NCBI GenBank assembly: GCA_044892505.1
Contig: CM097884.1
Coordinates: forward strand, 91,202,001 to 91,266,000
Length of the DNA stretch: 64,000 nucleotides
Direction of reading: 5' to 3'
From: Schmidtea nova
Lineage: Eukaryota
Position numbers and translations under genes: made by a program. Shown here in pieces: positions 3 to 64,000 of this stretch. The notes under the pieces are model-generated. The model saw nothing but the letters and a program-made list of their open reading frames with translations. It was not told the DNA's origin and did not search any database. The number at the start of each line of letters is the position of its first letter. The stretch's first letter is position 1.

Positions 3-3000
3 CCAACTAGACCAGGAGCTACAACAACTACAACTAGACGAACAACGACTCTGAAACCATGTGCCGTGAAACTCGTCATCAAAGATAAGCAATTGACAGG
101 AATTACAGTGACACCAAAGATTTCCAAGAGTGATGTTAAAAAGTTGAGACCTGATTGGAAACATCCAAAACAAGGTGTTGAGTTCAAACGTGGAAAACAC
201 ACAATTGTTGTCAAGATCGTCAAAGGCACTCACCAAAAGAAACCAAACAGAATCACAGCAGCCGGTTTGAAAGTAGTCAATGTCAATCCAGGCGACAAAT
301 TGAGCAAATACTTCAAGTCAGTTACAATTGTAATTACGAAACAAAAGTTCACAAGAGGTGGCAAACGAAAGACTGTCAAGAAAACGATTAAAGTCCCATT
401 GAAAACAATTGTTGACGATTTGAGAAATGTGTTGAGAAAACGACATCATTATGTGAAGAAAGTGACATTCAAATTTGAAGTGACGAAAGTTGTTAAAGTG
501 AAATTGGTTGTGAAAGGCTGTGTTGACAAAGTACCGACGCCACCAACATTGCGTCCAACAACTAAATCTACTCCAACTAGACCAGGAGCTACAACAACTA
601 CAACTAGACGAACAACGACTCTGAAACCATGTGCCGTGAAACTCGTCATCAAAGATAAGCAATTGACAGGAATTACAGTGACACCAAAGATTTCCAAGAG
701 TGATGTTAAAAAGTTGAGACCTGATTGGAAACATCCAAAACAAGGTGTTGAGTTCAAACGTGGAAAACACACAATTGTTGTCAAGATCGTCAAAGGCACT
801 CACCAAAAGAAACCAAACAGAATCACAGCAGCCGGTTTGAAAGTAGTCAATGTCAATCCAGGCGACAAATTGAGCAAATACTTCAAGTCAGTTACAATTG
901 TAATTACGAAACAAAAGTTCACAAGAGGTGGCAAACGAAAGACTGTCAAGAAAACGATTAAAGTCCCATTGAAAACAATTGTTGACGATTTGAGAAATGT
1001 GTTGAGAAAACCACATCATTATGTGAAGAAAGTGACATTCAAATTTGAAGTGACAAAAGTTGTTAAAGTGAAATTGGTTGTGAAAGGCTGTGTTGACAAA
1101 GTACCGACGCCACCAACATTGCGTCCAACAACTAAATCTACTCCAACTAGACCAGGAGCTACAACAACTACAACTAGACGAACAACGACTCTGAAACCAT
1201 GTGCCGTGAAACTCGTCATCAAAGATAAGCAATTGACAGGAATTACAGTGACACCAAAGATTTCCAAGAGTGATGTTAAAAAGTTGAGACCTGATTGGAA
1301 ACATCCAAAACAAGGTGTTGAGTTCAAACGTGGAAAACACACAATTGTTGTCAAGATCGTCAAAGGCACTCACCAAAAGAAACCAAACAGAATCACAGCA
1401 GCCGGTTTGAAAGTAGTCAATGTCAATCCAGGCGACAAATTGAGCAAATACTTCAAGTCAGTTACAATTGTAATTACGAAACAAAAGTTCACAAGAGGTG
1501 GCAAACGAAAGACTGTCAAGAAAACGATTAAAGTCCCATTGAAAACAATTGTTGACGATTTGAGAAATGTGTTGAGAAAACCACATCATTATGTGAAGAA
1601 AGTGACATTCAAATTTGAAGTGACGAAAGTTGTTAAAGTGAAATTGGTTGTGAAAGGCTGTGTTGACAAAGTACCGACGCCACCAACATTGCGTCCAACA
1701 ACTAAATCTACTCCAACTAGACCAGGAGCTACAACAACTACAACTAGACGAACAACGACTCTGAAACCATGTGCCGTGAAACTCGTCATCAAAGATAAGC
1801 AATTGACAGGAATTACAGTGACACCAAAGATTTCCAAGAGTGATGTTAAAAAGTTGAGACCTGATTGGAAACATCCAAAACAAGGTGTTGAGTTCAAACG
1901 TGGAAAACACACAATTGTTGTCAAGATCGTCAAAGGCACTCACCAAAAGAAACCAAACAGAATCACAGCAGCCGGTTTGAAAGTAGTCAATGTCAATCCA
2001 GGCGACAAATTGAGCAAATACTTCAAGTCAGTTACAATTGTAATTACGAAACAAAAGTTCACAAGAGGTGGCAAACGAAAGACTGTCAAGAAAACGATTA
2101 AAGTCCCATTGAAAACAATTGTTGACGATTTGAGAAATGTGTTGAGAAAACCACATCATTATGTGAAGAAAGTGACATTCAAATTTGAAGTGACAAAAGT
2201 TGTTAAAGTGAAATTGGTTGTGAAAGGCTGTGTTGACAAAGTACCGACGCCACCAACATTGCGTCCAACAACTAAATCTACTCCAACTAGACCAGGAGCT
2301 ACAACAACTACAACTAGACGAACAACGACTCTGAAACCATGTGCCGTGAAACTCGTCATCAAAGATAAGCAATTGACAGGAATTACAGTGACACCAAAGA
2401 TTTCCAAGAGTGATGTTAAAAAGTTGAGACCTGATTGGAAACATCCAAAACAAGGTGTTGAGTTCAAACGTGGAAAACACACAATTGTTGTCAAGATCGT
2501 CAAAGGCACTCACCAAAAGAAACCAAACAGAATCACAGCAGCCGGTTTGAAAGTAGTCAATGTCAATCCAGGCGACAAATTGAGCAAATACTTCAAGTCA
2601 GTTACAATTGTAATTACGAAACAAAAGTTCACAAGAGGTGGCAAACGAAAGACTGTCAAGAAAACGATTAAAGTCCCATTGAAAACAATTGTTGACGATT
2701 TGAGAAATGTGTTGAGAAAACCACATCATTATGTGAAGAAAGTGACATTCAAATTTGAAGTGACGAAAGTTGTTAAAGTGAAATTGGTTGTGAAAGGCTG
2801 TGTTGACAAAGTACCGACGCCACCAACATTGCGTCCAACAACTAAATCTACTCCAACTAGACCAGGAGCTACAACAACTACAACTAGACGAACAACGACT
2901 CTGAAACCATGTGCCGTGAAACTCGTCATCAAAGATAAGCAATTGACAGGAATTACAGTGACACCAAAGATTTCCAAGAGTGATGTTAAAAAGTTGAGAC

Positions 3001-6000
3001 CTGATTGGAAACATCCAAAACAAGGTGTTGAGTTCAAACGTGGAAAACACACAATTGTTGTCAAGATCGTCAAAGGCACTCACCAAAAGAAACCAAACAG
3101 AATCACAGCAGCCGGTTTGAAAGTAGTCAATGTCAATCCAGGCGACAAATTGAGCAAATACTTCAAGTCAGTTACAATTGTAATTACGAAACAAAAGTTC
3201 ACAAGAGGTGGCAAACGAAAGACTGTCAAGAAAACGATTAAAGTCCCATTGAAAACAATTGTTGACGATTTGAGAAATGTGTTGAGAAAACCACATCATT
3301 ATGTGAAGAAAGTGACATTCAAATTTGAAGTGACAAAAGTTGTTAAAGTGAAATTGGTTGTGAAAGGCTGTGTTGACAAAGTACCGACGCCACCAACATT
3401 GCGTCCAACAACTAAATCTACTCCAACTAGACCAGGAGCTACAACAACTACAACTAGACGAACAACGACTCTGAAACCATGTGCCGTGAAACTCGTCATC
3501 AAAGATAAGCAATTGACAGGAATTACAGTGACACCAAAGATTTCCAAGAGTGATGTTAAAAAGTTGAGACCTGATTGGAAACATCCAAAACAAGGTGTTG
3601 AGTTCAAACGTGGAAAACACACAATTGTTGTCAAGATCGTCAAAGGCACTCACCAAAAGAAACCAAACAGAATCACAGCAGCCGGTTTGAAAGTAGTCAA
3701 TGTCAATCCAGGCGACAAATTGAGCAAATACTTCAAGTCAGTTACAATTGTAATTACGAAACAAAAGTTCACAAGAGGTGGCAAACGAAAGACTGTCAAG
3801 AAAACGATTAAAGTCCCATTGAAAACAATTGTTGACGATTTGAGAAATGTGTTGAGAAAACCACATCATTATGTGAAGAAAGTGACATTCAAATTTGAAG
3901 TGACAAAAGTTGTTAAAGTGAAATTGGTTGTGAAAGGCTGTGTTGACAAAGTACCGACGCCACCAACATTGCGTCCAACAACTAAATCTACTCCAACTAG
4001 ACCAGGAGCTACAACAACTACAACTAGACGAACAACGACTCTGAAACCATGTGCCGTGAAACTCGTCATCAAAGATAAGCAATTGACAGGAATTACAGTG
4101 ACACCAAAGATTTCCAAGAGTGATGTTAAAAAGTTGAGACCTGATTGGAAACATCCAAAACAAGGTGTTGAGTTCAAACGTGGAAAACACACAATTGTTG
4201 TCAAGATCGTCAAAGGCACTCACCAAAAGAAACCAAACAGAATCACAGCAGCCGGTTTGAAAGTAGTCAATGTCAATCCAGGCGACAAATTGAGCAAATA
4301 CTTCAAGTCAGTTACAATTGTAATTACGAAACAAAAGTTCACAAGAGGTGGCAAACGAAAGACTGTCAAGAAAACGATTAAAGTCCCATTGAAAACAATT
4401 GTTGACGATTTGAGAAATGTGTTGAGAAAACCACATCATTATGTGAAGAAAGTGACATTCAAATTTGAAGTGACGAAAGTTGTTAAAGTGAAATTGGTTG
4501 TGAAAGGCTGTGTTGACAAAGTACCGACGCCACCAACATTGCGTCCAACAACTAAATCTACTCCAACTAGACCAGGAGCTACAACAACTACAACTAGACG
4601 AACAACGACTCTGAAACCATGTGCCGTGAAACTCGTCATCAAAGATAAGCAATTGACAGGAATTACAGTGACACCAAAGATTTCCAAGAGTGATGTTAAA
4701 AAGTTGAGACCTGATTGGAAACATCCAAAACAAGGTGTTGAGTTCAAACGTGGAAAACACACAATTGTTGTCAAGATCGTCAAAGGCACTCACCAAAAGA
4801 AACCAAACAGAATCACAGCAGCCGGTTTGAAAGTAGTCAATGTCAATCCAGGCGACAAATTGAGCAAATACTTCAAGTCAGTTACAATTGTAATTACGAA
4901 ACAAAAGTTCACAAGAGGTGGCAAACGAAAGACTGTCAAGAAAACGATTAAAGTCCCATTGAAAACAATTGTTGACGATTTGAGAAATGTGTTGAGAAAA
5001 CCACATCATTATGTGAAGAAAGTGACATTCAAATTTGAAGTGACAAAAGTTGTTAAAGTGAAATTGGTTGTGAAAGGCTGTGTTGACAAAGTACCGACGC
5101 CACCAACATTGCGTCCAACAACTAAATCTACTCCAACTAGACCAGGAGCTACAACAACTACAACTAGACGAACAACGACTCTGAAACCATGTGCCGTGAA
5201 ACTCGTCATCAAAGATAAGCAATTGACAGGAATTACAGTGACACCAAAGATTTCCAAGAGTGATGTTAAAAAGTTGAGACCTGATTGGAAACATCCAAAA
5301 CAAGGTGTTGAGTTCAAACGTGGAAAACACACAATTGTTGTCAAGATCGTCAAAGGCACTCACCAAAAGAAACCAAACAGAATCACAGCAGCCGGTTTGA
5401 AAGTAGTCAATGTCAATCCAGGCGACAAATTGAGCAAATACTTCAAGTCAGTTACAATTGTAATTACGAAACAAAAGTTCACAAGAGGTGGCAAACGAAA
5501 GACTGTCAAGAAAACGATTAAAGTCCCATTGAAAACAATTGTTGACGATTTGAGAAATGTGTTGAGAAAACCACATCATTATGTGAAGAAAGTGACATTC
5601 AAATTTGAAGTGACGAAAGTTGTTAAAGTGAAATTGGTTGTGAAAGGCTGTGTTGACAAAGTACCGACGCCACCAACATTGCGTCCAACAACTAAATCTA
5701 CTCCAACTAGACCAGGAGCTACAACAACTACAACTAGACGAACAACGACTCTGAAACCATGTGCCGTGAAACTCGTCATCAAAGATAAGCAATTGACAGG
5801 AATTACAGTGACACCAAAGATTTCCAAGAGTGATGTTAAAAAGTTGAGACCTGATTGGAAACATCCAAAACAAGGTGTTGAGTTCAAACGTGGAAAACAC
5901 ACAATTGTTGTCAAGATCGTCAAAGGCACTCACCAAAAGAAACCAAACAGAATCACAGCAGCCGGTTTGAAAGTAGTCAATGTCAATCCAGGCGACAAAT

Positions 6001-9000
6001 TGAGCAAATACTTCAAGTCAGTTACAATTGTAATTACGAAACAAAAGTTCACAAGAGGTGGCAAACGAAAGACTGTCAAGAAAACGATTAAAGTCCCATT
6101 GAAAACAATTGTTGACGATTTGAGAAATGTGTTGAGAAAACCACATCATTATGTGAAGAAAGTGACATTCAAATTTGAAGTGACGAAAGTTGTTAAAGTG
6201 AAATTGGTTGTGAAAGGCTGTGTTGACAAAGTACCGACGCCACCAACATTGCGTCCAACAACTAAATCTACTCCAACTAGACCAGGAGCTACAACAACTA
6301 CAACTAGACGAACAACGACTCTGAAACCATGTGCCGTGAAACTCGTCATCAAAGATAAGCAATTGACAGGAATTACAGTGACACCAAAGATTTCCAAGAG
6401 TGATGTTAAAAAGTTGAGACCTGATTGGAAACATCCAAAACAAGGTGTTGAGTTCAAACGTGGAAAACACACAATTGTTGTCAAGATCGTCAAAGGCACT
6501 CACCAAAAGAAACCAAACAGAATCACAGCAGCCGGTTTGAAAGTAGTCAATGTCAATCCAGGCGACAAATTGAGCAAATACTTCAAGTCAGTTACAATTG
6601 TAATTACGAAACAAAAGTTCACAAGAGGTGGCAAACGAAAGACTGTCAAGAAAACGATTAAAGTCCCATTGAAAACAATTGTTGACGATTTGAGAAATGT
6701 GTTGAGAAAACCACATCATTATGTGAAGAAAGTGACATTCAAATTTGAAGTGACGAAAGTTGTTAAAGTGAAATTGGTTGTGAAAGGCTGTGTTGACAAA
6801 GTACCGACGCCACCAACATTGCGTCCAACAACTAAATCTACTCCAACTAGACCAGGAGCTACAACAACTACAACTAGACGAACAACGACTCTGAAACCAT
6901 GTGCCGTGAAACTCGTCATCAAAGATAAGCAATTGACAGGAATTACAGTGACACCAAAGATTTCCAAGAGTGATGTTAAAAAGTTGAGACCTGATTGGAA
7001 ACATCCAAAACAAGGTGTTGAGTTCAAACGTGGAAAACACACAATTGTTGTCAAGATCGTCAAAGGCACTCACCAAAAGAAACCAAACAGAATCACAGCA
7101 GCCGGTTTGAAAGTAGTCAATGTCAATCCAGGCGACAAATTGAGCAAATACTTCAAGTCAGTTACAATTGTAATTACGAAACAAAAGTTCACAAGAGGTG
7201 GCAAACGAAAGACTGTCAAGAAAACGATTAAAGTCCCATTGAAAACAATTGTTGACGATTTGAGAAATGTGTTGAGAAAACCACATCATTATGTGAAGAA
7301 AGTGACATTCAAATTTGAAGTGACGAAAGTTGTTAAAGTGAAATTGGTTGTGAAAGGCTGTGTTGACAAAGTACCGACGCCACCAACATTGCGTCCAACA
7401 ACTAAATCTACTCCAACTAGACCAGGAGCTACAACAACTACAACTAGACGAACAACGACTCTGAAACCATGTGCCGTGAAACTCGTCATCAAAGATAAGC
7501 AATTGACAGGAATTACAGTGACACCAAAGATTTCCAAGAGTGATGTTAAAAAGTTGAGACCTGATTGGAAACATCCAAAACAAGGTGTTGAGTTCAAACG
7601 TGGAAAACACACAATTGTTGTCAAGATCGTCAAAGGCACTCACCAAAAGAAACCAAACAGAATCACAGCAGCCGGTTTGAAAGTAGTCAATGTCAATCCA
7701 GGCGACAAATTGAGCAAATACTTCAAGTCAGTTACAATTGTAATTACGAAACAAAAGTTCACAAGAGGTGGCAAACGAAAGACTGTCAAGAAAACGATTA
7801 AAGTCCCATTGAAAACAATTGTTGACGATTTGAGAAATGTGTTGAGAAAACCACATCATTATGTGAAGAAAGTGACATTCAAATTTGAAGTGACAAAAGT
7901 TGTTAAAGTGAAATTGGTTGTGAAAGGCTGTGTTGACAAAGTACCGACGCCACCAACATTGCGTCCAACAACTAAATCTACTCCAACTAGACCAGGAGCT
8001 ACAACAACTACAACTAGACGAACAACGACTCTGAAACCATGTGCCGTGAAACTCGTCATCAAAGATAAGCAATTGACAGGAATTACAGTGACACCAAAGA
8101 TTTCCAAGAGTGATGTTAAAAAGTTGAGACCTGATTGGAAACATCCAAAACAAGGTGTTGAGTTCAAACGTGGAAAACACACAATTGTTGTCAAGATCGT
8201 CAAAGGCACTCACCAAAAGAAACCAAACAGAATCACAGCAGCCGGTTTGAAAGTAGTCAATGTCAATCCAGGCGACAAATTGAGCAAATACTTCAAGTCA
8301 GTTACAATTGTAATTACGAAACAAAAGTTCACAAGAGGTGGCAAACGAAAGACTGTCAAGAAAACGATTAAAGTCCCATTGAAAACAATTGTTGACGATT
8401 TGAGAAATGTGTTGAGAAAACCACATCATTATGTGAAGAAAGTGACATTCAAATTTGAAGTGACAAAAGTTGTTAAAGTGAAATTGGTTGTGAAAGGCTG
8501 TGTTGACAAAGTACCGACGCCACCAACATTGCGTCCAACAACTAAATCTACTCCAACTAGACCAGGAGCTACAACAACTACAACTAGACGAACAACGACT
8601 CTGAAACCATGTGCCGTGAAACTCGTCATCAAAGATAAGCAATTGACAGGAATTACAGTGACACCAAAGATTTCCAAGAGTGATGTTAAAAAGTTGAGAC
8701 CTGATTGGAAACATCCAAAACAAGGTGTTGAGTTCAAACGTGGAAAACACACAATTGTTGTCAAGATCGTCAAAGGCACTCACCAAAAGAAACCAAACAG
8801 AATCACAGCAGCCGGTTTGAAAGTAGTCAATGTCAATCCAGGCGACAAATTGAGCAAATACTTCAAGTCAGTTACAATTGTAATTACGAAACAAAAGTTC
8901 ACAAGAGGTGGCAAACGAAAGACTGTCAAGAAAACGATTAAAGTCCCATTGAAAACAATTGTTGACGATTTGAGAAATGTGTTGAGAAAACCACATCATT

Positions 9001-12000
9001 ATGTGAAGAAAGTGACATTCAAATTTGAAGTGACGAAAGTTGTTAAAGTGAAATTGGTTGTGAAAGGCTGTGTTGACAAAGTACCGACGCCACCAACATT
9101 GCGTCCAACAACTAAATCTACTCCAACTAGACCAGGAGCTACAACAACTACAACTAGACGAACAACGACTCTGAAACCATGTGCCGTGAAACTCGTCATC
9201 AAAGATAAGCAATTGACAGGAATTACAGTGACACCAAAGATTTCCAAGAGTGATGTTAAAAAGTTGAGACCTGATTGGAAACATCCAAAACAAGGTGTTG
9301 AGTTCAAACGTGGAAAACACACAATTGTTGTCAAGATCGTCAAAGGCACTCACCAAAAGAAACCAAACAGAATCACAGCAGCCGGTTTGAAAGTAGTCAA
9401 TGTCAATCCAGGCGACAAATTGAGCAAATACTTCAAGTCAGTTACAATTGTAATTACGAAACAAAAGTTCACAAGAGGTGGCAAACGAAAGACTGTCAAG
9501 AAAACGATTAAAGTCCCATTGAAAACAATTGTTGACGATTTGAGAAATGTGTTGAGAAAACCACATCATTATGTGAAGAAAGTGACATTCAAATTTGAAG
9601 TGACGAAAGTTGTTAAAGTGAAATTGGTTGTGAAAGGCTGTGTTGACAAAGTACCGACGCCACCAACATTGCGTCCAACAACTAAATCTACTCCAACTAG
9701 ACCAGGAGCTACAACAACTACAACTAGACGAACAACGACTCTGAAACCATGTGCCGTGAAACTCGTCATCAAAGATAAGCAATTGACAGGAATTACAGTG
9801 ACACCAAAGATTTCCAAGAGTGATGTTAAAAAGTTGAGACCTGATTGGAAACATCCAAAACAAGGTGTTGAGTTCAAACGTGGAAAACACACAATTGTTG
9901 TCAAGATCGTCAAAGGCACTCACCAAAAGAAACCAAACAGAATCACAGCAGCCGGTTTGAAAGTAGTCAATGTCAATCCAGGCGACAAATTGAGCAAATA
10001 CTTCAAGTCAGTTACAATTGTAATTACGAAACAAAAGTTCACAAGAGGTGGCAAACGAAAGACTGTCAAGAAAACGATTAAAGTCCCATTGAAAACAATT
10101 GTTGACGATTTGAGAAATGTGTTGAGAAAACCACATCATTATGTGAAGAAAGTGACATTCAAATTTGAAGTGACGAAAGTTGTTAAAGTGAAATTGGTTG
10201 TGAAAGGCTGTGTTGACAAAGTACCGACGCCACCAACATTGCGTCCAACAACTAAATCTACTCCAACTAGACCAGGAGCTACAACAACTACAACTAGACG
10301 AACAACGACTCTGAAACCATGTGCCGTGAAACTCGTCATCAAAGATAAGCAATTGACAGGAATTACAGTGACACCAAAGATTTCCAAGAGTGATGTTAAA
10401 AAGTTGAGACCTGATTGGAAACATCCAAAACAAGGTGTTGAGTTCAAACGTGGAAAACACACAATTGTTGTCAAGATCGTCAAAGGCACTCACCAAAAGA
10501 AACCAAACAGAATCACAGCAGCCGGTTTGAAAGTAGTCAATGTCAATCCAGGCGACAAATTGAGCAAATACTTCAAGTCAGTTACAATTGTAATTACGAA
10601 ACAAAAGTTCACAAGAGGTGGCAAACGAAAGACTGTCAAGAAAACGATTAAAGTCCCATTGAAAACAATTGTTGACGATTTGAGAAATGTGTTGAGAAAA
10701 CCACATCATTATGTGAAGAAAGTGACATTCAAATTTGAAGTGACAAAAGTTGTTAAAGTGAAATTGGTTGTGAAAGGCTGTGTTGACAAAGTACCGACGC
10801 CACCAACATTGCGTCCAACAACTAAATCTACTCCAACTAGACCAGGAGCTACAACAACTACAACTAGACGAACAACGACTCTGAAACCATGTGCCGTGAA
10901 ACTCGTCATCAAAGATAAGCAATTGACAGGAATTACAGTGACACCAAAGATTTCCAAGAGTGATGTTAAAAAGTTGAGACCTGATTGGAAACATCCAAAA
11001 CAAGGTGTTGAGTTCAAACGTGGAAAACACACAATTGTTGTCAAGATCGTCAAAGGCACTCACCAAAAGAAACCAAACAGAATCACAGCAGCCGGTTTGA
11101 AAGTAGTCAATGTCAATCCAGGCGACAAATTGAGCAAATACTTCAAGTCAGTTACAATTGTAATTACGAAACAAAAGTTCACAAGAGGTGGCAAACGAAA
11201 GACTGTCAAGAAAACGATTAAAGTCCCATTGAAAACAATTGTTGACGATTTGAGAAATGTGTTGAGAAAACCACATCATTATGTGAAGAAAGTGACATTC
11301 AAATTTGAAGTGACAAAAGTTGTTAAAGTGAAATTGGTTGTGAAAGGCTGTGTTGACAAAGTACCGACGCCACCAACATTGCGTCCAACAACTAAATCTA
11401 CTCCAACTAGACCAGGAGCTACAACAACTACAACTAGACGAACAACGACTCTGAAACCATGTGCCGTGAAACTCGTCATCAAAGATAAGCAATTGACAGG
11501 AATTACAGTGACACCAAAGATTTCCAAGAGTGATGTTAAAAAGTTGAGACCTGATTGGAAACATCCAAAACAAGGTGTTGAGTTCAAACGTGGAAAACAC
11601 ACAATTGTTGTCAAGATCGTCAAAGGCACTCACCAAAAGAAACCAAACAGAATCACAGCAGCCGGTTTGAAAGTAGTCAATGTCAATCCAGGCGACAAAT
11701 TGAGCAAATACTTCAAGTCAGTTACAATTGTAATTACGAAACAAAAGTTCACAAGAGGTGGCAAACGAAAGACTGTCAAGAAAACGATTAAAGTCCCATT
11801 GAAAACAATTGTTGACGATTTGAGAAATGTGTTGAGAAAACCACATCATTATGTGAAGAAAGTGACATTCAAATTTGAAGTGACGAAAGTTGTTAAAGTG
11901 AAATTGGTTGTGAAAGGCTGTGTTGACAAAGTACCGACGCCACCAACATTGCGTCCAACAACTAAATCTACTCCAACTAGACCAGGAGCTACAACAACTA

Positions 12001-51000: not shown

Positions 51001-54000
51001 AAGTAGTCAATGTCAATCCAGGCGACAAATTGAGCAAATACTTCAAGTCAGTTACAATTGTAATTACGAAACAAAAGTTCACAAGAGGTGGCAAACGAAA
51101 GACTGTCAAGAAAACGATTAAAGTCCCATTGAAAACAATTGTTGACGATTTGAGAAATGTGTTGAGAAAACCACATCATTATGTGAAGAAAGTGACATTC
51201 AAATTTGAAGTGACGAAAGTTGTTAAAGTGAAATTGGTTGTGAAAGGCTGTGTTGACAAAGTACCGACGCCACCAACATTGCGTCCAACAACTAAATCTA
51301 CTCCAACTAGACCAGGAGCTACAACAACTACAACTAGACGAACAACGACTCTGAACCCATGTGCCGTGAAACTCGTCATCAAAGATAAGCAATTGACAGG
51401 AATTACAGTGACACCAAAGATTTCCAAGAGTGATGTTAAAAAGTTGAGACCTGATTGGAAACATCCAAAACAAGGTGTTGAGTTCAAACGTGGAAAACAC
51501 ACAATTGTTGTCAAGATCGTCAAAGGCACTCACCAAAAGAAACCAAACAGAATCACAGCAGCCGGTTTGAAAGTAGTCAATGTCAATCCAGGCGACAAAT
51601 TGAGCAAATACTTCAAGTCAGTTACAATTGTAATTACGAAACAAAAGTTCACAAGAGGTGGCAAACGAAAGACTGTCAAGAAAACGATTAAAGTCCCATT
51701 GAAAACAATTGTTGACGATTTGAGAAATGTGTTGAGAAAACCACATCATTATGTGAAGAAAGTGACATTCAAATTTGAAGTGACGAAAGTTGTTAAAGTG
51801 AAATTGGTTGTGAAAGGCTGTGTTGACAAAGTACCGACGCCACCAACATTGCGTCCAACAACTAAATCTACTCCAACTAGACCAGGAGCTACAACAACTA
51901 CAACTAGACGAACAACGACTCTGAAACCATGTGCCGTGAAACTCGTCATCAAAGATAAGCAATTGACAGGAATTACAGTGACACCAAAGATTTCCAAGAG
52001 TGATGTTAAAAAGTTGAGACCTGATTGGAAACATCCAAAACAAGGTGTTGAGTTCAAACGTGGAAAACACACAATTGTTGTCAAGATCGTCAAAGGCACT
52101 CACCAAAAGAAACCAAACAGAATCACAGCAGCCGGTTTGAAAGTAGTCAATGTCAATCCAGGCGACAAATTGAGCAAATACTTCAAGTCAGTTACAATTG
52201 TAATTACGAAACAAAAGTTCACAAGAGGTGGCAAACGAAAGACTGTCAAGAAAACGATTAAAGTCCCATTGAAAACAATTTTTGACGATTTGAAAAACGT
52301 TTTGAGAAAACCACATCATTATGTGAAGAAAGTGACAATCAAATTTGAAGTGACGAAAGTTGTTAAAGTGAAATTGGTTGTGAAAGGCTGTGTTGACAAA
52401 GTACCGACGCCGCCAACATTGCGTCCAACAACTAAATCTACTCCAACTAGACCAGGAGCTACAACAACTACAACTAGACGAACAACGACTCTGAAACCAT
52501 GTGCCGTGAAACTCGTCATCAAAGATAAGCAATTGACAGGAATTACAGTGACACCAAAGATTTCCAATAGTGATGTTAAAAAGTTGAGACCTGATTGGAA
52601 ACATCCAAAACAAGGTGTTGAGTTCAAACGTGGAAAACACACAATTGTTGTCAAGATCGTCAAAGGCACTCACCAAAAGAAACCAAACAGAATCACAGCA
52701 GCCGGTTTGAAAGTAGTCAATGTCAATCCAGGCGACAAATTGAGCAAATACTTCAAGTCAGTTACAATTGTAATTACGAAACAAAAGTTCACAAGAGGTG
52801 GCAAACGAAAGACTGTCAAGAAAACGATTAAAGTCCCATTGAAAACAATTGTTGACGATTTGAAAAACGTTTTGAGAAAACCACATCATTATGTGAAGAA
52901 AGTGACAATCAAATTTGAAGTGACGAAAGTTGTTAAAGTGAAATTGGTTGTGAAAGGCTGTGTTGACAAAGTACCGACGCCACCAACATTGCGTCCAACA
53001 ACTAAATCTACTCCAACTAGACCAGGAGCTACAACAACTACAACTAGACGAACAACGACTCTGAAACCATGTGCCGTGAAACTCGTCATCAAAGATAAGC
53101 AATTGACAGGAATTACAGTGACACCAAAGATTTCCAAGAGTGATGTTAAAAAGTTGAGACCTGATTGGAAACATCCAAAACAAGGTGTTGAGTTCAAACG
53201 TGGAAAACACACAATTGTTGTCAAGATCGTCAAAGGCACTCACCAAAAGAAACCAAACAGAATCACAGCAGCCGGTTTGAAAGTAGTCAATGTCAATCCA
53301 GGCGACAAATTGAGCAAATACTTCAAGTCAGTTACAATTGTAATTACGAAACAAAAGTTCACAAGAGGTGGCAAACGAAAGACTGTCAAGAAAACGATTA
53401 AAGTCCCATTGAAAACAATTGTTGACGATTTGAGAAATGTGTTGAGAAAACCACATCATTATGTGAAGAAAGTGACATTCAAATTTGAAGTGACGAAAGT
53501 TGTTAAAGTGAAATTGGTTGTGAAAGGCTGTGTTGACAAAGTACCGACGCCACCAACATTGCGTCCAACAACTAAATCTACTCCAACTAGACCAGGAGCT
53601 ACAACAACTACAACTAGACGAACAACGACTCTGAAACCATGTGCCGTGAAACTCGTCATCAAAGATAAGCAATTGACAGGAATTACAGTGACACCAAAGA
53701 TTTCCAAGAGTGATGTTAAAAAGTTGAGACCTGATTGGAAACATCCAAAACAAGGTGTTGAGTTCAAACGTGGAAAACACACAATTGTTGTCAAGATCGT
53801 CAAAGGCACTCACCAAAAGAAACCAAACAGAATCACAGCAGCCGGTTTGAAAGTAGTCAATGTCAATCCAGGCGACAAATTGAGCAAATACTTCAAGTCA
53901 GTTACAATTGTAATTACGAAACAAAAGTTCACAAGAGGTGGCAAACGAAAGACTGTCAAGAAAACGATTAAAGTCCCATTGAAAACAATTGTTGACGATT

Positions 54001-57000
54001 TGAGAAATGTGTTGAGAAAACCACATCATTATGTGAAGAAAGTGACATTCAAATTTGAAGTGACGAAAGTTGTTAAAGTGAAATTGGTTGTGAAAGGCTG
54101 TGTTGACAAAGTACCGACGCCACCAACATTGCGTCCAACAACTAAATCTACTCCAACTAGACCAGGAGCTACAACAACTACAACTAGACGAACAACGACT
54201 CTGAAACCATGTGCCGTGAAACTCGTCATCAAAGATAAGCAATTGACAGGAATTACAGTGACACCAAAGATTTCCAAGAGTGATGTTAAAAAGTTGAGAC
54301 CTGATTGGAAACATCCAAAACAAGGTGTTGAGTTCAAACGTGGAAAACACACAATTGTTGTCAAGATCGTCAAAGGCACTCACCAAAAGAAACCAAACAG
54401 AATCACAGCAGCCGGTTTGAAAGTAGTCAATGTCAATCCAGGCGACAAATTGAGCAAATACTTCAAGTCAGTTACAATTGTAATTACGAAACAAAAGTTC
54501 ACAAGAGGTGGCAAACGAAAGACTGTCAAGAAAACGATTAAAGTCCCATTGAAAACAATTTTTGACGATTTGAAAAACGTTTTGAGAAAACCACATCATT
54601 ATGTGAAGAAAGTGACAATCAAATTTGAAGTGACGAAAGTTGTTAAAGTGAAATTGGTTGTGAAAGGCTGTGTTGACAAAGTACCGACGCCGCCAACATT
54701 GCGTCCAACAACTAAATCTACTCCAACTAGACCAGGAGCTACAACAACTACAACTAGACGAACAACGACTCTGAAACCATGTGCCGTGAAACTCGTCATC
54801 AAAGATAAGCAATTGACAGGAATTACAGTGACACCAAAGATTTCCAAGAGTGATGTTAAAAAGTTGAGACCTGATTGGAAACATCCAAAACAAGGTGTTG
54901 AGTTCAAACGTGGAAAACACACAATTGTTGTCAAGATCGTCAAAGGCACTCACCAAAAGAAACCAAACAGAATCACAGCAGCCGGTTTGAAAGTAGTCAA
55001 TGTCAATCCAGGCGACAAATTGAGCAAATACTTCAAGTCAGTTACAATTGTAATTACGAAACAAAAGTTCACAAGAGGTGGCAAACGAAAGACTGTCAAG
55101 AAAACGATTAAAGTCCCATTGAAAACAATTGTTGACGATTTGAGAAATGTGTTGAGAAAACCACATCATTATGTGAAGAAAGTGACATTCAAATTTGAAG
55201 TGACGAAAGTTGTTAAAGTGAAATTGGTTGTGAAAGGCTGTGTTGACAAAGTACCGACGCCACCAACATTGCGTCCAACAACTAAATCTACTCCAACTAG
55301 ACCAGGAGCTACAACAACTACAACTAGACGAACAACGACTCTGAAACCATGTGCCGTGAAACTCGTCATCAAAGATAAGCAATTGACAGGAATTACAGTG
55401 ACACCAAAGATTTCCAAGAGTGATGTTAAAAAGTTGAGACCTGATTGGAAACATCCAAAACAAGGTGTTGAGTTCAAACGTGGAAAACACACAATTGTTG
55501 TCAAGATCGTCAAAGGCACTCACCAAAAGAAACCAAACAGAATCACAGCAGCCGGTTTGAAAGTAGTCAATGTCAATCCAGGCGACAAATTGAGCAAATA
55601 CTTCAAGTCAGTTACAATTGTAATTACGAAACAAAAGTTCACAAGAGGTGGCAAACGAAAGACTGTCAAGAAAACGATTAAAGTCCCATTGAAAACAATT
55701 TTTGACGATTTGAAAAACGTTTTGAGAAAACCACATCATTATGTGAAGAAAGTGACAATCAAATTTGAAGTGACGAAAGTTGTTAAAGTGAAATTGGTTG
55801 TGAAAGGCTGTGTTGACAAAGTACCGACGCCGCCAACATTGCGTCCAACAACTAAATCTACTCCAACTAGACCAGGAGCTACAACAACTACAACTAGACG
55901 AACAACGACTCTGAAACCATGTGCCGTGAAACTCGTCATCAAAGATAAGCAATTGACAGGAATTACAGTGACACCAAAGATTTCCAAGAGTGATGTTAAA
56001 AAGTTGAGACCTGATTGGAAACATCCAAAACAAGGTGTTGAGTTCAAACGTGGAAAACACACAATTGTTGTCAAGATCGTCAAAGGCACTCACCAAAAGA
56101 AACCAAACAGAATCACAGCAGCCGGTTTGAAAGTAGTCAATGTCAATCCAGGCGACAAATTGAGCAAATACTTCAAGTCAGTTACAATTGTAATTACGAA
56201 ACAAAAGTTCACAAGAGGTGGCAAACGAAAGACTGTCAAGAAAACGATTAAAGTCCCATTGAAAACAATTGTTGACGATTTGAGAAATGTGTTGAGAAAA
56301 CCACATCATTATGTGAAGAAAGTGACATTCAAATTTGAAGTGACGAAAGTTGTTAAAGTGAAATTGGTTGTGAAAGGCTGTGTTGACAAAGTACCGACGC
56401 CACCAACATTGCGTCCAACAACTAAATCTACTCCAACTAGACCAGGAGCTACAACAACTACAACTAGACGAACAACGACTCTGAAACCATGTGCCGTGAA
56501 ACTCGTCATCAAAGATAAGCAATTGACAGGAATTACAGTGACACCAAAGATTTCCAAGAGTGATGTTAAAAAGTTGAGACCTGATTGGAAACATCCAAAA
56601 CAAGGTGTTGAGTTCAAACGTGGAAAACACACAATTGTTGTCAAGATCGTCAAAGGCACTCACCAAAAGAAACCAAACAGAATCACAGCAGCCGGTTTGA
56701 AAGTAGTCAATGTCAATCCAGGCGACAAATTGAGCAAATACTTCAAGTCAGTTACAATTGTAATTACGAAACAAAAGTTCACAAGAGGTGGCAAACGAAA
56801 GACTGTCAAGAAAACGATTAAAGTCCCATTGAAAACAATTTTTGACGATTTGAAAAACGTTTTGAGAAAACCACATCATTATGTGAAGAAAGTGACAATC
56901 AAATTTGAAGTGACGAAAGTTGTTAAAGTGAAATTGGTTGTGAAAGGCTGTGTTGACAAAGTACCGACGCCGCCAACATTGCGTCCAACAACTAAATCTA

Positions 57001-60000
57001 CTCCAACTAGACCAGGAGCTACAACAACTACAACTAGACGAACAACGACTCTGAAACCATGTGCCGTGAAACTCGTCATCAAAGATAAGCAATTGACAGG
57101 AATTACAGTGACACCAAAGATTTCCAAGAGTGATGTTAAAAAGTTGAGACCTGATTGGAAACATCCAAAACAAGGTGTTGAGTTCAAACGTGGAAAACAC
57201 ACAATTGTTGTCAAGATCGTCAAAGGCACTCACCAAAAGAAACCAAACAGAATCACAGCAGCCGGTTTGAAAGTAGTCAATGTCAATCCAGGCGACAAAT
57301 TGAGCAAATACTTCAAGTCAGTTACAATTGTAATTACGAAACAAAAGTTCACAAGAGGTGGCAAACGAAAGACTGTCAAGAAAACGATTAAAGTCCCATT
57401 GAAAACAATTTTTGACGATTTGAGAAATGTGTTGAGAAAACCACATCATTATGTGAAGAAAGTGACATTCAAATTTGAAGTGACGAAAGTTGTTAAAGTG
57501 AAATTGGTTGTGAAAGGCTGTGTTGACAAAGTACCGACGCCGCCAACATTGCGTCCAACAACTAAATCTACTCCAACTAGACCAGGAGCTACAACAACTA
57601 CAACTAGACGAACAACGACTCTGAAACCATGTGCCGTGAAACTCGTCATCAAAGATAAGCAATTGACAGGAATTACAGTGACACCAAAGATTTCCAAGAG
57701 TGATGTTAAAAAGTTGAGACCTGATTGGAAACATCCAAAACAAGGTGTTGAGTTCAAACGTGGAAAACACACAATTGTTGTCAAGATCGTCAAAGGCACT
57801 CACCAAAAGAAACCAAACAGAATCACAGCAGCCGGTTTGAAAGTAGTCAATGTCAATCCAGGCGACAAATTGAGCAAATACTTCAAGTCAGTTACAATTG
57901 TAATTACGAAACAAAAGTTCACAAGAGGTGGCAAACGAAAGACTGTCAAGAAAACGATTAAAGTCCCATTGAAAACAATTGTTGACGATTTGAGAAATGT
58001 GTTGAGAAAACCACATCATTATGTGAAGAAAGTGACATTCAAATTTGAAGTGACGAAAGTTGTTAAAGTGAAATTGGTTGTGAAAGGCTGTGTTGACAAA
58101 GTACCGACGCCACCAACATTGCGTCCAACAACTAAATCTACTCCAACTAGACCAGGAGCTACAACAACTACAACTAGACGAACAACGACTCTGAAACCAT
58201 GTGCCGTGAAACTCGTCATCAAAGATAAGCAATTGACAGGAATTACAGTGACACCAAAGATTTCCAAGAGTGATGTTAAAAAGTTGAGACCTGATTGGAA
58301 ACATCCAAAACAAGGTGTTGAGTTCAAACGTGGAAAACACACAATTGTTGTCAAGATCGTCAAAGGCACTCACCAAAAGAAACCAAACAGAATCACAGCA
58401 GCCGGTTTGAAAGTAGTCAATGTCAATCCAGGCGACAAATTGAGCAAATACTTCAAGTCAGTTACAATTGTAATTACGAAACAAAAGTTCACAAGAGGTG
58501 GCAAACGAAAGACTGTCAAGAAAACGATTAAAGTCCCATTGAAAACAATTGTTGACGATTTGAGAAATGTGTTGAGAAAACCACATCATTATGTGAAGAA
58601 AGTGACATTCAAATTTGAAGTGACGAAAGTTGTTAAAGTGAAATTGGTTGTGAAAGGCTGTGTTGACAAAGTACCGACGCCACCAACATTGCGTCCAACA
58701 ACTAAATCTACTCCAACTAGACCAGGAGCTACAACAACTACAACTAGACGAACAACGACTCTGAAACCATGTGCCGTGAAACTCGTCATCAAAGATAAGC
58801 AATTGACAGGAATTACAGTGACACCAAAGATTTCCAAGAGTGATGTTAAAAAGTTGAGACCTGATTGGAAACATCCAAAACAAGGTGTTGAGTTCAAACG
58901 TGGAAAACACACAATTGTTGTCAAGATCGTCAAAGGCACTCACCAAAAGAAACCAAACAGAATCACAGCAGCCGGTTTGAAAGTAGTCAATGTCAATCCA
59001 GGCGACAAATTGAGCAAATACTTCAAGTCAGTTACAATTGTAATTACGAAACAAAAGTTCACAAGAGGTGGCAAACGAAAGACTGTCAAGAAAACGATTA
59101 AAGTCCCATTGAAAACAATTTTTGACGATTTGAGAAATGTGTTGAGAAAACCACATCATTATGTGAAGAAAGTGACATTCAAATTTGAAGTGACGAAAGT
59201 TGTTAAAGTGAAATTGGTTGTGAAAGGCTGTGTTGACAAAGTACCGACGCCGCCAACATTGCGTCCAACAACTAAATCTACTCCAACTAGACCAGGAGCT
59301 ACAACAACTACAACTAGACGAACAACGACTCTGAAACCATGTGCCGTGAAACTCGTCATCAAAGATAAGCAATTGACAGGAATTACAGTGACACCAAAGA
59401 TTTCCAAGAGTGATGTTAAAAAGTTGAGACCTGATTGGAAACATCCAAAACAAGGTGTTGAGTTCAAACGTGGAAAACACACAATTGTTGTCAAGATCGT
59501 CAAAGGCACTCACCAAAAGAAACCAAACAGAATCACAGCAGCCGGTTTGAAAGTAGTCAATGTCAATCCAGGCGACAAATTGAGCAAATACTTCAAGTCA
59601 GTTACAATTGTAATTACGAAACAAAAGTTCACAAGAGGTGGCAAACGAAAGACTGTCAAGAAAACGATTAAAGTCCCATTGAAAACAATTTTTGACGATT
59701 TGAAAAACGTTTTGAGAAAACCACATCATTATGTGAAGAAAGTGACAATCAAATTTGAAGTGACGAAAGTTGTTAAAGTGAAATTGGTTGTGAAAGGCTG
59801 TGTTGACAAAGTACCGACGCCGCCAACATTGCGTCCAACAACTAAATCTACTCCAACTAGACCAGGAGCTACAACAACTACAACTAGACGAACAACGACT
59901 CTGAAACCATGTGCCGTGAAACTCGTCATCAAAGATAAGCAATTGACAGGAATTACAGTGACACCAAAGATTTCCAAGAGTGATGTTAAAAAGTTGAGAC

Positions 60001-63000
60001 CTGATTGGAAACATCCAAAACAAGGTGTTGAGTTCAAACGTGGAAAACACACAATTGTTGTCAAGATCGTCAAAGGCACTCACCAAAAGAAACCAAACAG
60101 AATCACAGCAGCCGGTTTGAAAGTAGTCAATGTCAATCCAGGCGACAAATTGAGCAAATACTTCAAGTCAGTTACAATTGTAATTACGAAACAAAAGTTC
60201 ACAAGAGGTGGCAAACGAAAGACTGTCAAGAAAACGATTAAAGTCCCATTGAAAACAATTGTTGACGATTTGAGAAATGTGTTGAGAAAACCACATCATT
60301 ATGTGAAGAAAGTGACATTCAAATTTGAAGTGACGAAAGTTGTTAAAGTGAAATTGGTTGTGAAAGGCTGTGTTGACAAAGTACCGACGCCACCAACATT
60401 GCGTCCAACAACTAAATCTACTCCAACTAGACCAGGAGCTACAACAACTACAACTAGACGAACAACGACTCTGAAACCATGTGCCGTGAAACTCGTCATC
60501 AAAGATAAGCAATTGACAGGAATTACAGTGACACCAAAGATTTCCAAGAGTGATGTTAAAAAGTTGAGACCTGATTGGAAACATCCAAAACAAGGTGTTG
60601 AGTTCAAACGTGGAAAACACACAATTGTTGTCAAGATCGTCAAAGGCACTCACCAAAAGAAACCAAACAGAATCACAGCAGCCGGTTTGAAAGTAGTCAA
60701 TGTCAATCCAGGCGACAAATTGAGCAAATACTTCAAGTCAGTTACAATTGTAATTACGAAACAAAAGTTCACAAGAGGTGGCAAACGAAAGACTGTCAAG
60801 AAAACGATTAAAGTCCCATTGAAAACAATTTTTGACGATTTGAAAAACGTTTTGAGAAAACCACATCATTATGTGAAGAAAGTGACAATCAAATTTGAAG
60901 TGACGAAAGTTGTTAAAGTGAAATTGGTTGTGAAAGGCTGTGTTGACAAAGTACCGACGCCGCCAACATTGCGTCCAACAACTAAATCTACTCCAACTAG
61001 ACCAGGAGCTACAACAACTACAACTAGACGAACAACGACTCTGAAACCATGTGCCGTGAAACTCGTCATCAAAGATAAGCAATTGACAGGAATTACAGTG
61101 ACACCAAAGATTTCCAAGAGTGATGTTAAAAAGTTGAGACCTGATTGGAAACATCCAAAACAAGGTGTTGAGTTCAAACGTGGAAAACACACAATTGTTG
61201 TCAAGATCGTCAAAGGCACTCACCAAAAGAAACCAAACAGAATCACAGCAGCCGGTTTGAAAGTAGTCAATGTCAATCCAGGCGACAAATTGAGCAAATA
61301 CTTCAAGTCAGTTACAATTGTAATTACGAAACAAAAGTTCACAAGAGGTGGCAAACGAAAGACTGTCAAGAAAACGATTAAAGTCCCATTGAAAACAATT
61401 GTTGACGATTTGAGAAATGTGTTGAGAAAACCACATCATTATGTGAAGAAAGTGACATTCAAATTTGAAGTGACGAAAGTTGTTAAAGTGAAATTGGTTG
61501 TGAAAGGCTGTGTTGACAAAGTACCGACGCCACCAACATTGCGTCCAACAACTAAATCTACTCCAACTAGACCAGGAGCTACAACAACTACAACTAGACG
61601 AACAACGACTCTGAAACCATGTGCCGTGAAACTCGTCATCAAAGATAAGCAATTGACAGGAATTACAGTGACACCAAAGATTTCCAAGAGTGATGTTAAA
61701 AAGTTGAGACCTGATTGGAAACATCCAAAACAAGGTGTTGAGTTCAAACGTGGAAAACACACAATTGTTGTCAAGATCGTCAAAGGCACTCACCAAAAGA
61801 AACCAAACAGAATCACAGCAGCCGGTTTGAAAGTAGTCAATGTCAATCCAGGCGACAAATTGAGCAAATACTTCAAGTCAGTTACAATTGTAATTACGAA
61901 ACAAAAGTTCACAAGAGGTGGCAAACGAAAGACTGTCAAGAAAACGATTAAAGTCCCATTGAAAACAATTTTTGACGATTTGAAAAACGTTTTGAGAAAA
62001 CCACATCATTATGTGAAGAAAGTGACAATCAAATTTGAAGTGACGAAAGTTGTTAAAGTGAAATTGGTTGTGAAAGGCTGTGTTGACAAAGTACCGACGC
62101 CGCCAACATTGCGTCCAACAACTAAATCTACTCCAACTAGACCAGGAGCTACAACAACTACAACTAGACGAACAACGACTCTGAAACCATGTGCCGTGAA
62201 ACTCGTCATCAAAGATAAGCAATTGACAGGAATTACAGTGACACCAAAGATTTCCAAGAGTGATGTTAAAAAGTTGAGACCTGATTGGAAACATCCAAAA
62301 CAAGGTGTTGAGTTCAAACGTGGAAAACACACAATTGTTGTCAAGATCGTCAAAGGCACTCACCAAAAGAAACCAAACAGAATCACAGCAGCCGGTTTGA
62401 AAGTAGTCAATGTCAATCCAGGCGACAAATTGAGCAAATACTTCAAGTCAGTTACAATTGTAATTACGAAACAAAAGTTCACAAGAGGTGGCAAACGAAA
62501 GACTGTCAAGAAAACGATTAAAGTCCCATTGAAAACAATTGTTGACGATTTGAGAAATGTGTTGAGAAAACCACATCATTATGTGAAGAAAGTGACATTC
62601 AAATTTGAAGTGACGAAAGTTGTTAAAGTGAAATTGGTTGTGAAAGGCTGTGTTGACAAAGTACCGACGCCACCAACATTGCGTCCAACAACTAAATCTA
62701 CTCCAACTAGACCAGGAGCTACAACAACTACAACTAGACGAACAACGACTCTGAAACCATGTGCCGTGAAACTCGTCATCAAAGATAAGCAATTGACAGG
62801 AATTACAGTGACACCAAAGATTTCCAAGAGTGATGTTAAAAAGTTGAGACCTGATTGGAAACATCCAAAACAAGGTGTTGAGTTCAAACGTGGAAAACAC
62901 ACAATTGTTGTCAAGATCGTCAAAGGCACTCACCAAAAGAAACCAAACAGAATCACAGCAGCCGGTTTGAAAGTAGTCAATGTCAATCCAGGCGACAAAT

Positions 63001-63998
63001 TGAGCAAATACTTCAAGTCAGTTACAATTGTAATTACGAAACAAAAGTTCACAAGAGGTGGCAAACGAAAGACTGTCAAGAAAACGATTAAAGTCCCATT
63101 GAAAACAATTTTTGACGATTTGAGAAATGTGTTGAGAAAACCACATCATTATGTGAAGAAAGTGACATTCAAATTTGAAGTGACGAAAGTTGTTAAAGTG
63201 AAATTGGTTGTGAAAGGCTGTGTTGACAAAGTACCGACGCCGCCAACATTGCGTCCAACAACTAAATCTACTCCAACTAGACCAGGAGCTACAACAACTA
63301 CAACTAGACGAACAACGACTCTGAAACCATGTGCCGTGAAACTCGTCATCAAAGATAAGCAATTGACAGGAATTACAGTGACACCAAAGATTTCCAAGAG
63401 TGATGTTAAAAAGTTGAGACCTGATTGGAAACATCCAAAACAAGGTGTTGAGTTCAAACGTGGAAAACACACAATTGTTGTCAAGATCGTCAAAGGCACT
63501 CACCAAAAGAAACCAAACAGAATCACAGCAGCCGGTTTGAAAGTAGTCAATGTCAATCCAGGCGACAAATTGAGCAAATACTTCAAGTCAGTTACAATTG
63601 TAATTACGAAACAAAAGTTCACAAGAGGTGGCAAACGAAAGACTGTCAAGAAAACGATTAAAGTCCCATTGAAAACAATTTTTGACGATTTGAAAAACGT
63701 TTTGAGAAAACCACATCATTATGTGAAGAAAGTGACAATCAAATTTGAAGTGACGAAAGTTGTTAAAGTGAAATTGGTTGTGAAAGGCTGTGTTGACAAA
63801 GTACCGACGCCGCCAACATTGCGTCCAACAACTAAATCTACTCCAACTAGACCAGGAGCTACAACAACTACAACTAGACGAACAACGACTCTGAAACCAT
63901 GTGCCGTGAAACTCGTCATCAAAGATAAGCAATTGACAGGAATTACAGTGACACCAAAGATTTCCAAGAGTGATGTTAAAAAGTTGAGACCTGATTGG
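3..63998 (+). CDS. Internal fragment (open at both ends) of a giant tandem-repeat protein, at least 21,332 aa: 112 x 190-aa units of a basic discoidin/FA58C-like domain plus a Thr/Pro-rich linker. Probably a secreted mucin-like or structural protein. Absent from the supplied ORF track.
   Basis: Manual translation from base 3 gives PTRPGATTTTTRRTTTLKPCAVKLVIKDKQLTGITVTPKISKSDVKKLRPDWKHPKQGVEFKRGKHTIVVKIVKGTHQKKPNRITAAGLKVVNVNPGDKLSKYFKSVTIVITKQKFTRGGKRKTVKKTIKVPLKTIVDDLRNVLRKPHHYVKKVTFKFEVTKVVKVKLVVKGCVDKVPTPPTLRPTTKST (190 aa), with no stop and no Met. The unit length of 570 is divisible by 3. The other two + frames stop at once (TAG at 8-10, TGA at 52-54). All 21 variants seen are missense or synonymous in this frame. 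Exact 570-bp spacing of the track ORFs shows no net indel. The open frame is seen directly; expression and function are inferred. Confidence 0.88.
60..521 (+). other. Repeat domain (first copy; recurs every 570 bp): Cys20 to Cys173, 154 aa, divergent discoidin / F5-8 type C (FA58C)-like beta-rich domain, highly Lys/Val-rich
   Basis: Motifs match the FA58C pattern by eye and in the right order: terminal Cys pair, IKDKQLT (compare I.D.QITASS), W-K-H-P (compare W.P), HTIVVKI (compare WLQVDL), RITAAG (compare VTGI.TQG), YFKSVTI (compare YVKSYKI), and KVKLVVKGC (compare LRLELYGC). The Cys-to-Cys length fits the roughly 150-aa fold. No HMM or structure search was run. Confidence 0.55.
522..629 (+). 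other. Thr/Pro-rich mucin-like linker (first copy; recurs every 570 bp): VDKVPTPPTLRPTTKSTPTRPGATTTTTRRTTTLKP
   Basis: 36 aa between Cys173 and the next Cys20, containing 14 Thr, 7 Pro and 1 Ser. This PTS composition is typical of O-glycosylated spacers. Glycosylation is inferred. Confidence 0.75.
5701..17100 (+). repeat. Loose 5-unit (2850-bp) periodicity of the synonymous Thr161 ACG>ACA marker
   Basis: The marker at unit offset 485 occurs in units 2, 4, 6, 7, 9, 14, 15, 19, 20, 29 and 30. Units 11-15, 16-20 and 26-30 each read A,A,A,a,a. It rests on a single marker, so support is modest. Confidence 0.5.
19951..33630 (+). repeat. 12-unit (6840-bp) higher-order duplication: units 36-47 and 48-59
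   Basis: Both blocks have the haplotype order A,C,C,A,B,B+K90Q+D138Y,A,B,B+K90Q+g542,C,A,B+K90Q. The rare D138Y change is at 23214 and 30054, exactly 6840 bp apart. Confidence 0.9.
33631..35910 (+). repeat. 4-unit block (units 60-63) matching units 44-47 (24511-26790), offset 9120 bp
   Basis: Same haplotype order. The rare T9N (25108, 34228) and K157Q (25551, 34671) changes occur only in units 45 and 61. Confidence 0.85.
39331..44460 (+). repeat. 3-unit (1710-bp) higher-order repeat in three copies, units 70-78
   Basis: Synonymous CCA>CCC at 39728, 41438 and 43148. Synonymous CCG>CCA at 41006, 42716 and 44426. The order B,A,B repeats three times. Confidence 0.9.
54151..63840 (+). repeat. 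Predominantly 2-unit (1140-bp) alternation of A and C haplotypes with interspersed mosaic D units, units 96-112
   Basis: The order is C,A,C,A,C,D,A,A,D,C,A,C,A,C,A,D,C. C carries V137F, the B block and g542. D carries V137F and g542 around an A-type core. Confidence 0.75.
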
Positions 63999-64000
63999 AA

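Follow-up and report, generated by a model that had tools for sequence, protein, structure and literature searches.

The stretch of DNA analyzed here, referred to below as the window, comprises 64,000 nucleotides of Schmidtea nova (GenBank assembly GCA_044892505.1, contig CM097884.1, forward-strand positions 91,202,001 to 91,266,000), contains no N, and is occupied by a tandem array of 570-bp units that a single reading frame crosses from end to end. At a lag of 570, bases agree at a rate of 0.994, a value maintained at multiples of 570, against about 0.3 at adjacent lags. Unit alignment resolves 112 full copies of 190 codons on the plus strand, in perfect register (window positions 3 to 63,842), followed by 158 bases of a partial 113th unit (63,843 to 64,000); there are no indels among the 112 copies. 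Six-frame translation shows that the plus frame starting at base 3 runs through 21,332 codons (3 to 63,998) free of stops, methionines and any N or X, and is open at both window ends; the other five frames each contain 112 to 2,693 stops. The original prediction, made from the sequence letters alone, had claimed just such a frame running off both ends of the window, and full translation bore this out, with neither an in-frame stop nor a frameshift. Its mass estimates, about 21 kDa for a unit and 2.4 MDa or more within the window, also agree with our computed values of 21.3 kDa (190 residues, isoelectric point (pI) 11.0) and 2.389 MDa before glycosylation. The window product has 225 cysteines, 3,709 threonines and serines combined, 20.1% lysine, 14.8% threonine and a pI of about 11; roughly one residue in four is lysine or arginine. 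Tandem Repeats Finder reported no repeat in the window, because the period of 570 bases exceeds the longest that it handles (500). In our preferred reading, to which we give a probability of roughly 60%, the window encodes the repeat core of a giant structural protein of the planarian, one that is secreted, polycationic and O-glycosylated.

Each unit consists of two parts. The larger is a domain of 154 residues that begins and ends with a cysteine (Cys20 to Cys173; in the first unit, window positions 60 to 521 on the plus strand), and which contains 35 lysines, 25 valines, 14 threonines and 10 isoleucines, giving it a net charge of about +34 (about +40 for the whole unit). In stretches of the domain, hydrophobic residues and lysines alternate in a way that is typical of amphipathic beta strands. 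The smaller part is a linker of 36 residues between Cys173 and Cys20 of the next unit (for example, window positions 522 to 629, plus strand), made up of unit residues 174 to 190 and 1 to 19, with 14 threonines, 7 prolines and one RR pair. The linker resembles the proline/threonine/serine-rich (PTS) stalk of mucins in composition, and this PTS-like part accounts for 36 of the 190 residues (19%). The only two cysteines of a unit lie at either end of the domain, a placement that suggests a disulfide tying the domain termini together, with inter-chain cross-links as the alternative. N-glycosylation sequons are absent from the window frame, except in two variant units. Structure predictions with AlphaFold2 had low confidence, with a predicted local distance difference test score (pLDDT) of 41.6 for the unit and 44.6 for the domain alone. 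Both of these low-confidence runs agree on seven to eight strands and one helix of 10 to 12 residues, which is predicted at about unit residues 133 to 144, over the sole acidic patch.

This anatomy bears on the question whether the chain stays whole. As an alternative to a single structural protein, the product could be a polyprotein precursor, in which cuts between the units would turn the chain into over 100 molecules of a basic protein, each of about 21 kDa, such as an antimicrobial or glycan-binding mucus component, after the model of the nematode polyprotein allergens or profilaggrin. One unit is indeed identical to the next and complete in itself, having a cysteine pair and a linker of its own, and there are several dibasic sites per unit in addition to the RR pair of each linker. 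However, a motif scan of all 21,332 residues found neither the furin motif R-x-[KR]-R nor a tetrabasic site, and a threonine- and proline-rich linker of this length is typical of glycosylated stalks. Cleavage at the RR pair would moreover be hindered, since the pair sits in a threonine run that would bear glycans, and the known flatworm adhesives with a repeat core are described as single large proteins (PMC6410801, PMC9229212). We therefore consider the polyprotein improbable, and retain the intact structural chain as the preferred reading.

We then asked how much weight the open frame itself can bear. The 112 copies show 278 differences from their consensus, and these are confined to 21 distinct sites. 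Considering that 4.4% of the possible substitutions in a unit create a stop, the probability that none of 21 variants does so is about 0.39. In other words, with only 21 variant sites, the openness of the full 64 kb is no stronger evidence than the openness of one unit, and the length of the frame, on which the original prediction had leaned, is not an independent argument. The open unit itself is significant: when the 570-bp unit was treated as circular, only 1 of 20,000 composition-preserving shuffles remained open (the unit is 40% A, and its length is a multiple of three). Within the window, the 21 variant site types comprise 6 synonymous and 15 non-synonymous changes (ratio 0.77), so recent constraint is not visible there.

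Evidence for constraint comes instead from a related version of the unit, which we read from the public runs X5 and X8 (organism B) and from the poly(A) metatranscriptome X18 by comparing window positions 3 to 602 with these runs. The related version is about 90 to 95% alike to the window unit, and nearly all organism B copies carry identical differences from the window, from which it follows that the array is under concerted evolution. Outside a cluster of changes at positions 229 to 237, the codon changes between the two versions are 15 synonymous and 5 non-synonymous; the cluster adds 2 synonymous changes and one His-to-Arg replacement, for a total of 17 synonymous and 6 non-synonymous changes. 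Of the changed bases, 18 of 24 fall at third codon positions of the plus frame. With 134 synonymous and 436 non-synonymous sites, the synonymous divergence (dS) is about 0.14 and the non-synonymous divergence (dN) about 0.014, giving a dN/dS of about 0.10; the binomial probability of the synonymous excess is 4.6e-7. The five single-base replacements are all conservative (E to D, V to I twice, G to D and R to K), and the reading frame is kept in the related version, because a one-base gap and a one-base insertion at 230/232 cancel each other. This pattern of purifying selection between two versions, read from the sequences, is the strongest evidence that the array encodes a constrained protein. 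The domain aligns well between the versions; the linker, which forms both ends of the compared stretch, and the cluster at 229 to 237 align poorly. The linker thus seems to diverge faster than the domain, and its divergence is undercounted here owing to the poor alignment of these ends in organism B.

The same runs provide evidence for transcription. Summed word depth across the unit ranges from 2e5 to 3e6 in X5 and from 3e4 to 8e5 in X8, spread over thousands of short contigs, a level far above any that DNA contamination from a repeat of a few hundred copies would produce. Loose poly(A) ends sit behind A-rich plus-strand sites at 142, 229, 308 and 346, and a SMART-type template-switch oligonucleotide precedes plus-strand positions (321 in X18). 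Given the chemistry of such libraries, both kinds of end point to plus-sense RNA with internal oligo-dT priming. In X18, a contig of 488 bases covers positions 445 to 574 and then resumes at 5, that is, it goes back by 570 bases. In poly(A) RNA, one unit thus runs straight into the next, and every part of the unit is retained. The runs that carry the sequence include a freshwater metatranscriptome. The unit has nine runs of four or more A, several of the loose poly(A) ends lie near its A-rich spots, and oligo-dT libraries therefore probably prime repeatedly on each transcript, which would inflate the read counts. The hexamer ATTAAA occurs once per unit on the plus strand (112 times; for example at window positions 387 to 392), and AATAAA does not occur on either strand anywhere in the window. 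The expectation that the plus strand is transcribed thus held in part: plus-sense RNA-type signal is present, but it belongs to the related version and not demonstrably to this genome.

Selection and transcription together bear on a second alternative, in which the array would be satellite DNA of coding origin that is transcribed, or a pseudogene in expansion; the unit would stem from an exon, but no functional giant protein would be translated from the present array. The window contains no methionine, start or stop, its own variants lack a synonymous bias, and given so few variant sites its openness can be explained without selection, all of which a satellite would share. Against this stand the low dN/dS between the organisms with its small binomial probability, a frame that has stayed intact in the relative's version despite a divergence of about 5%, RNA-type libraries that cover this version at very high depth and show poly(A)-primed as well as template-switch ends, and the lack of any indel in 64 kb. 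We consider a satellite very improbable. The claim that the frame is coding rather than dead satellite DNA was in this respect upheld, by the dN/dS, by the abundant RNA-type signal and by the continuity from unit to unit.

In the array itself, the variants are ordered. When units are coded by their variant pattern, they fall into 22 types, which are arranged in zones. In units 0 to 31 (window positions of about 3 to 18,242), two types (A and C) alternate; units 32 to 78 (about 18,243 to 45,032) are a mixture of about ten types (D, E, F, J, K, G, H and others); and in units 79 to 111 (about 45,033 to 63,842), three types (A, B and I) alternate. Such zonal sets indicate local homogenization rather than mixing across the whole array. 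In the middle zone, 12 units have been duplicated in frame (units 35 to 46 and 47 to 58, 6.84 kb each, window positions 19,953 to 33,632, plus strand), and the two copies differ at 4 bases. In the left zone, from about position 5,703, periodicities are shorter, at 5, 10 and 15 units. The ordered variant pattern is the product expected of unequal crossing-over. The second most common pattern is a linked haplotype of four sites, at unit positions 421, 425, 428 and 465 (window positions 424, 428, 431 and 468 in the first unit), which is carried by about 47 of the 112 units. Its states at window positions 424, 428 and 431 are those that are near-fixed in organism B, reflecting either an ancestral polymorphism held in common or incomplete homogenization. 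In addition, the first unit alone carries G for C at window position 442, replacing Pro with Arg in ...LRK(P/R)HH...; a contig from run X1 has the consensus C at this site.

A last alternative concerns size only, and is compatible with each of the other readings: the length or order of the array might in part be an artefact of assembly and the true open reading frame (ORF) shorter, seeing that units that are 99.4% alike form arrays that are difficult to assemble, and that in X1 the array collapses into one 600-base loop contig (570 + 30) and one 399-base variant contig, but the ordered zones and the clean 12-unit duplication in place of random mixing, the perfect register across the window, and a collapsed X1 loop far deeper than expected of single-copy sequence lead us to doubt this strongly. 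The zones and the duplication therefore disfavor a scrambled assembly, without thereby proving the length of the array.

To identify relatives of the unit, we searched sequence, structure and literature resources. Pfam gave only sub-threshold noise for the unit, with no match to F5_F8_type_C, SEA, VWD or any other family; a sequence search of the PDB returned 0 matches; and two ESM Atlas searches gave scores of at most 0.69 to mixed beta-sandwich families, which were not usable. A word-indexed search across 5.8 billion proteins found no match. An exhaustive phmmer search of 1.84 billion representatives found a single one, a repeat protein rich in proline, serine and alanine, which we judged to be a chance match of low-complexity sequence. 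Metagenome contigs gave no match by protein or by exact 26-mer, and a look-up of the exact product expected from the loop contig, an ORF of 199 residues, found nothing on record. Foldseek, run with the low-confidence model against the PDB and the clusters of the AlphaFold database, returned nothing at E < 1e-3 or at a template modeling (TM) score > 0.4. Matches to the little finger of Y-family polymerases (E > 1e-3, TM < 0.4) were set aside as a generic alpha/beta resemblance. In the published literature, a text search across 8.4 million papers found no occurrence of the unit's peptides, and a literature search found no paper that identifies a comparable repeat protein of glue or mucus in planarians (triclads). 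The suggestion that the gene may be undescribed thus stood up, in that neither sequence nor fold searches returned a described relative. These blank searches are weak evidence of novelty, since they also missed the organism B version, which is present in public runs.

By architecture and composition, the ap2 adhesion proteins of flatworms are the closest described system. Mlig-ap2 of Macrostomum lignano has 14,794 residues, with central repeats of 21 x 255 and 25 x 221 residues that are flanked by vWD/TIL/LDL and TSP-1 domains (PMC6410801). In Macrostomum, polyanions block adhesion and polycations block release, in line with an electrostatic mechanism (PMC6410801). Tmed-ap2 of Theama mediterranea has 7,228 residues, repeats of 330 and 230 residues and a signal peptide, with 22.5% lysine and 11% O-glycosylation motifs, and ap2 sequences are not conserved across taxa (PMC9229212). 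Like the window array, these proteins (and Mile-ap2 of Minona ileanae) have a core of long tandem units (221 to 330 residues, compared with 190 here) that are taxon-specific and without known domains, a lysine content of about 20 to 22%, and dense O-glycosylation motifs, for which the threonine- and proline-rich linker would be the counterpart here, judging from its composition. They differ in having 20 to 46 units and total lengths of 7,228 to 14,794 residues, compared with at least 112 units and at least 21,332 residues in the window, and their repeat copies are far less uniform. Furthermore, ap2 proteins are defined by a signal peptide, vWD/TIL/LDL/TSP-1 flanks, gland expression and a knock-down phenotype, whereas the window holds tandem units alone. 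A duo-gland marginal adhesive organ of comparable kind exists in planarians (PMC8602322), and our literature search found no paper that names its glue protein.

Giant repeat exons are already known from mucins, Balbiani-ring genes and flatworm adhesives. The longest alleles of MUC12 predict 23,080 residues, and its central exon has been called the largest human coding exon (2026 pangenome preprint, PMC13345508). The original prediction's statement that the window holds an exon at least three times the size of the largest human exons (17 to 22 kb) is therefore outdated, the MUC12 alleles being of similar size. MUC12, MUC16 and MUC4 have a very large uninterrupted repeat exon, to which the frame that is unbroken across the window may correspond, and, like the window array, they have threonine- and proline-rich stretches between modules. 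In MUC16, a folded module alternates with a linker in units of 156 residues. The window unit differs from mucins in that it is PTS-like only in its linker, the remainder being a basic globular orphan domain, as well as in the strong positive charge of the protein and in the lack of SEA, VWD or other Pfam matches. The sp-I proteins of the Balbiani rings of Chironomus are also megadalton-sized, secreted, basic and cysteine-containing, and are encoded by exons comprising tens of kilobases of near-identical units under very high transcription in gland cells; their units have 60 to 90 residues, four cysteines and a short sub-repeat region. They share no sequence similarity with the window unit, and stem from an insect rather than a flatworm. 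Finally, the domain recalls discoidin (F5_F8_type_C) in its length of about 150 residues, a cysteine at each end, a C-terminal ...V-x-G-C and a predicted beta-rich core. By sequence, discoidin is not supported, with no PF00754 match at E <= 10 and no PDB sequence match. By fold, an eight-stranded jelly roll with an end-to-end disulfide is conceivable: the cysteines at both ends would suit it, the low-confidence models (pLDDT 42 to 45) include a well-predicted helix between strands that differs from discoidin, and Foldseek gave no discoidin match with them.

On the preferred reading of a giant structural protein, the window would lie inside a single coding exon of very large size, and its product would be a string of beads. 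Each 190-residue unit would form one bead, a compact 154-residue domain of mixed beta/alpha structure closed by the disulfide between Cys20 and Cys173, with a surface coated in lysines, and a stiff threonine- and proline-rich linker bearing O-glycans would connect it to the next. The charge of each unit would then allow electrostatic binding of polyanions, candidates being the glycocalyx, the acid glycans of mucus, and substrates that are mineral or coated with biofilm. In mucus used for adhesion or locomotion, the chain would thereby act as a scaffold that binds surfaces or provides cohesion, as has been proposed for flatworm ap2. Unequal crossing-over or gene conversion would homogenize the array, in other words concerted evolution, and selection would preserve the protein. 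Secretion, glycosylation, the disulfide, translation as a single chain and the adhesive or mucus role are the parts of this reading that we infer. As to the role, an adhesive one is a tentative assignment, and a more general role in mucus or in the rhabdite matrix is somewhat less probable.

Several observations weigh against this reading. A start codon, a signal peptide, a stop and flanking domains are all absent from the window, and the phmmer search of 1.84 billion representatives brought up nothing similar in sequence to an ap2 protein or a mucin. The fold models are of low confidence (pLDDT 42 to 45), and the window's own variants (ratio 0.77) carry no synonymous bias. The transcription signal comes from a version that is about 90 to 95% alike, in related organisms; X5 and X8 were only guessed to be RNA, and their depth was read without a silent control stretch. 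For X1 to X4 (organism A), in which the sequence is near-identical, the kind of library is not on record. Lastly, this evidence consists of contigs and not of reads, its depth is a bulk figure that does not tell cell types apart, and a single transcript across all units is beyond the reach of contigs.

What stands out at this locus is an array of at least 112 uniform (99.4%) long units with a folded domain, an orphan domain that is extremely basic, and the apparent lack of an entry in protein databases, even though expression in a relative is very high. If the reading of a giant structural protein is correct, the array would represent a major secreted-material gene of the planarian, encoding a glue or mucus scaffold, which would have escaped annotation because short reads collapse the array; for ap2-type repeat genes, assembly from short reads is not possible (PMC8621496). 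It would provide the missing triclad candidate for the model of flatworm temporary adhesion in which the surface-binding protein is taxon-specific, and a natural template for biomimetic wet adhesives, with a cationic folded bead and a glycosylated spacer. It would also be a striking case of concerted evolution, in which more than 100 coding units are kept near-identical under selection at the protein level, and its reads may form a noticeable, unmapped share of RNA libraries from such animals. It is conceivable, though unlikely, that the array extends far enough beyond the window for the polypeptide to exceed titin (about 36,000 residues), for which at least 190 units are needed. In that case, it would be the largest protein-coding exon known in any animal, with an orphan domain of new fold; by mass, its transcript would also rank among the most abundant in a regeneration model that has been studied closely, yet be missing from the gene sets of that model.

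The ORF listing of the window contains solely antisense ORFs, of 162 and 116 residues, each once per unit (for example, window positions 318 to 806 and 449 to 799, both on the minus strand). The plus frame is missing from this listing because the lister by design omits ORFs that run off the source, as had been surmised from the letters alone. We do not judge the antisense ORFs to be genes, since the substitution pattern between the two versions fits the plus frame. In composition, they mirror the Lys/Thr-rich sense frame as shadows that are rich either in Val or in Cys, Phe and Ser.

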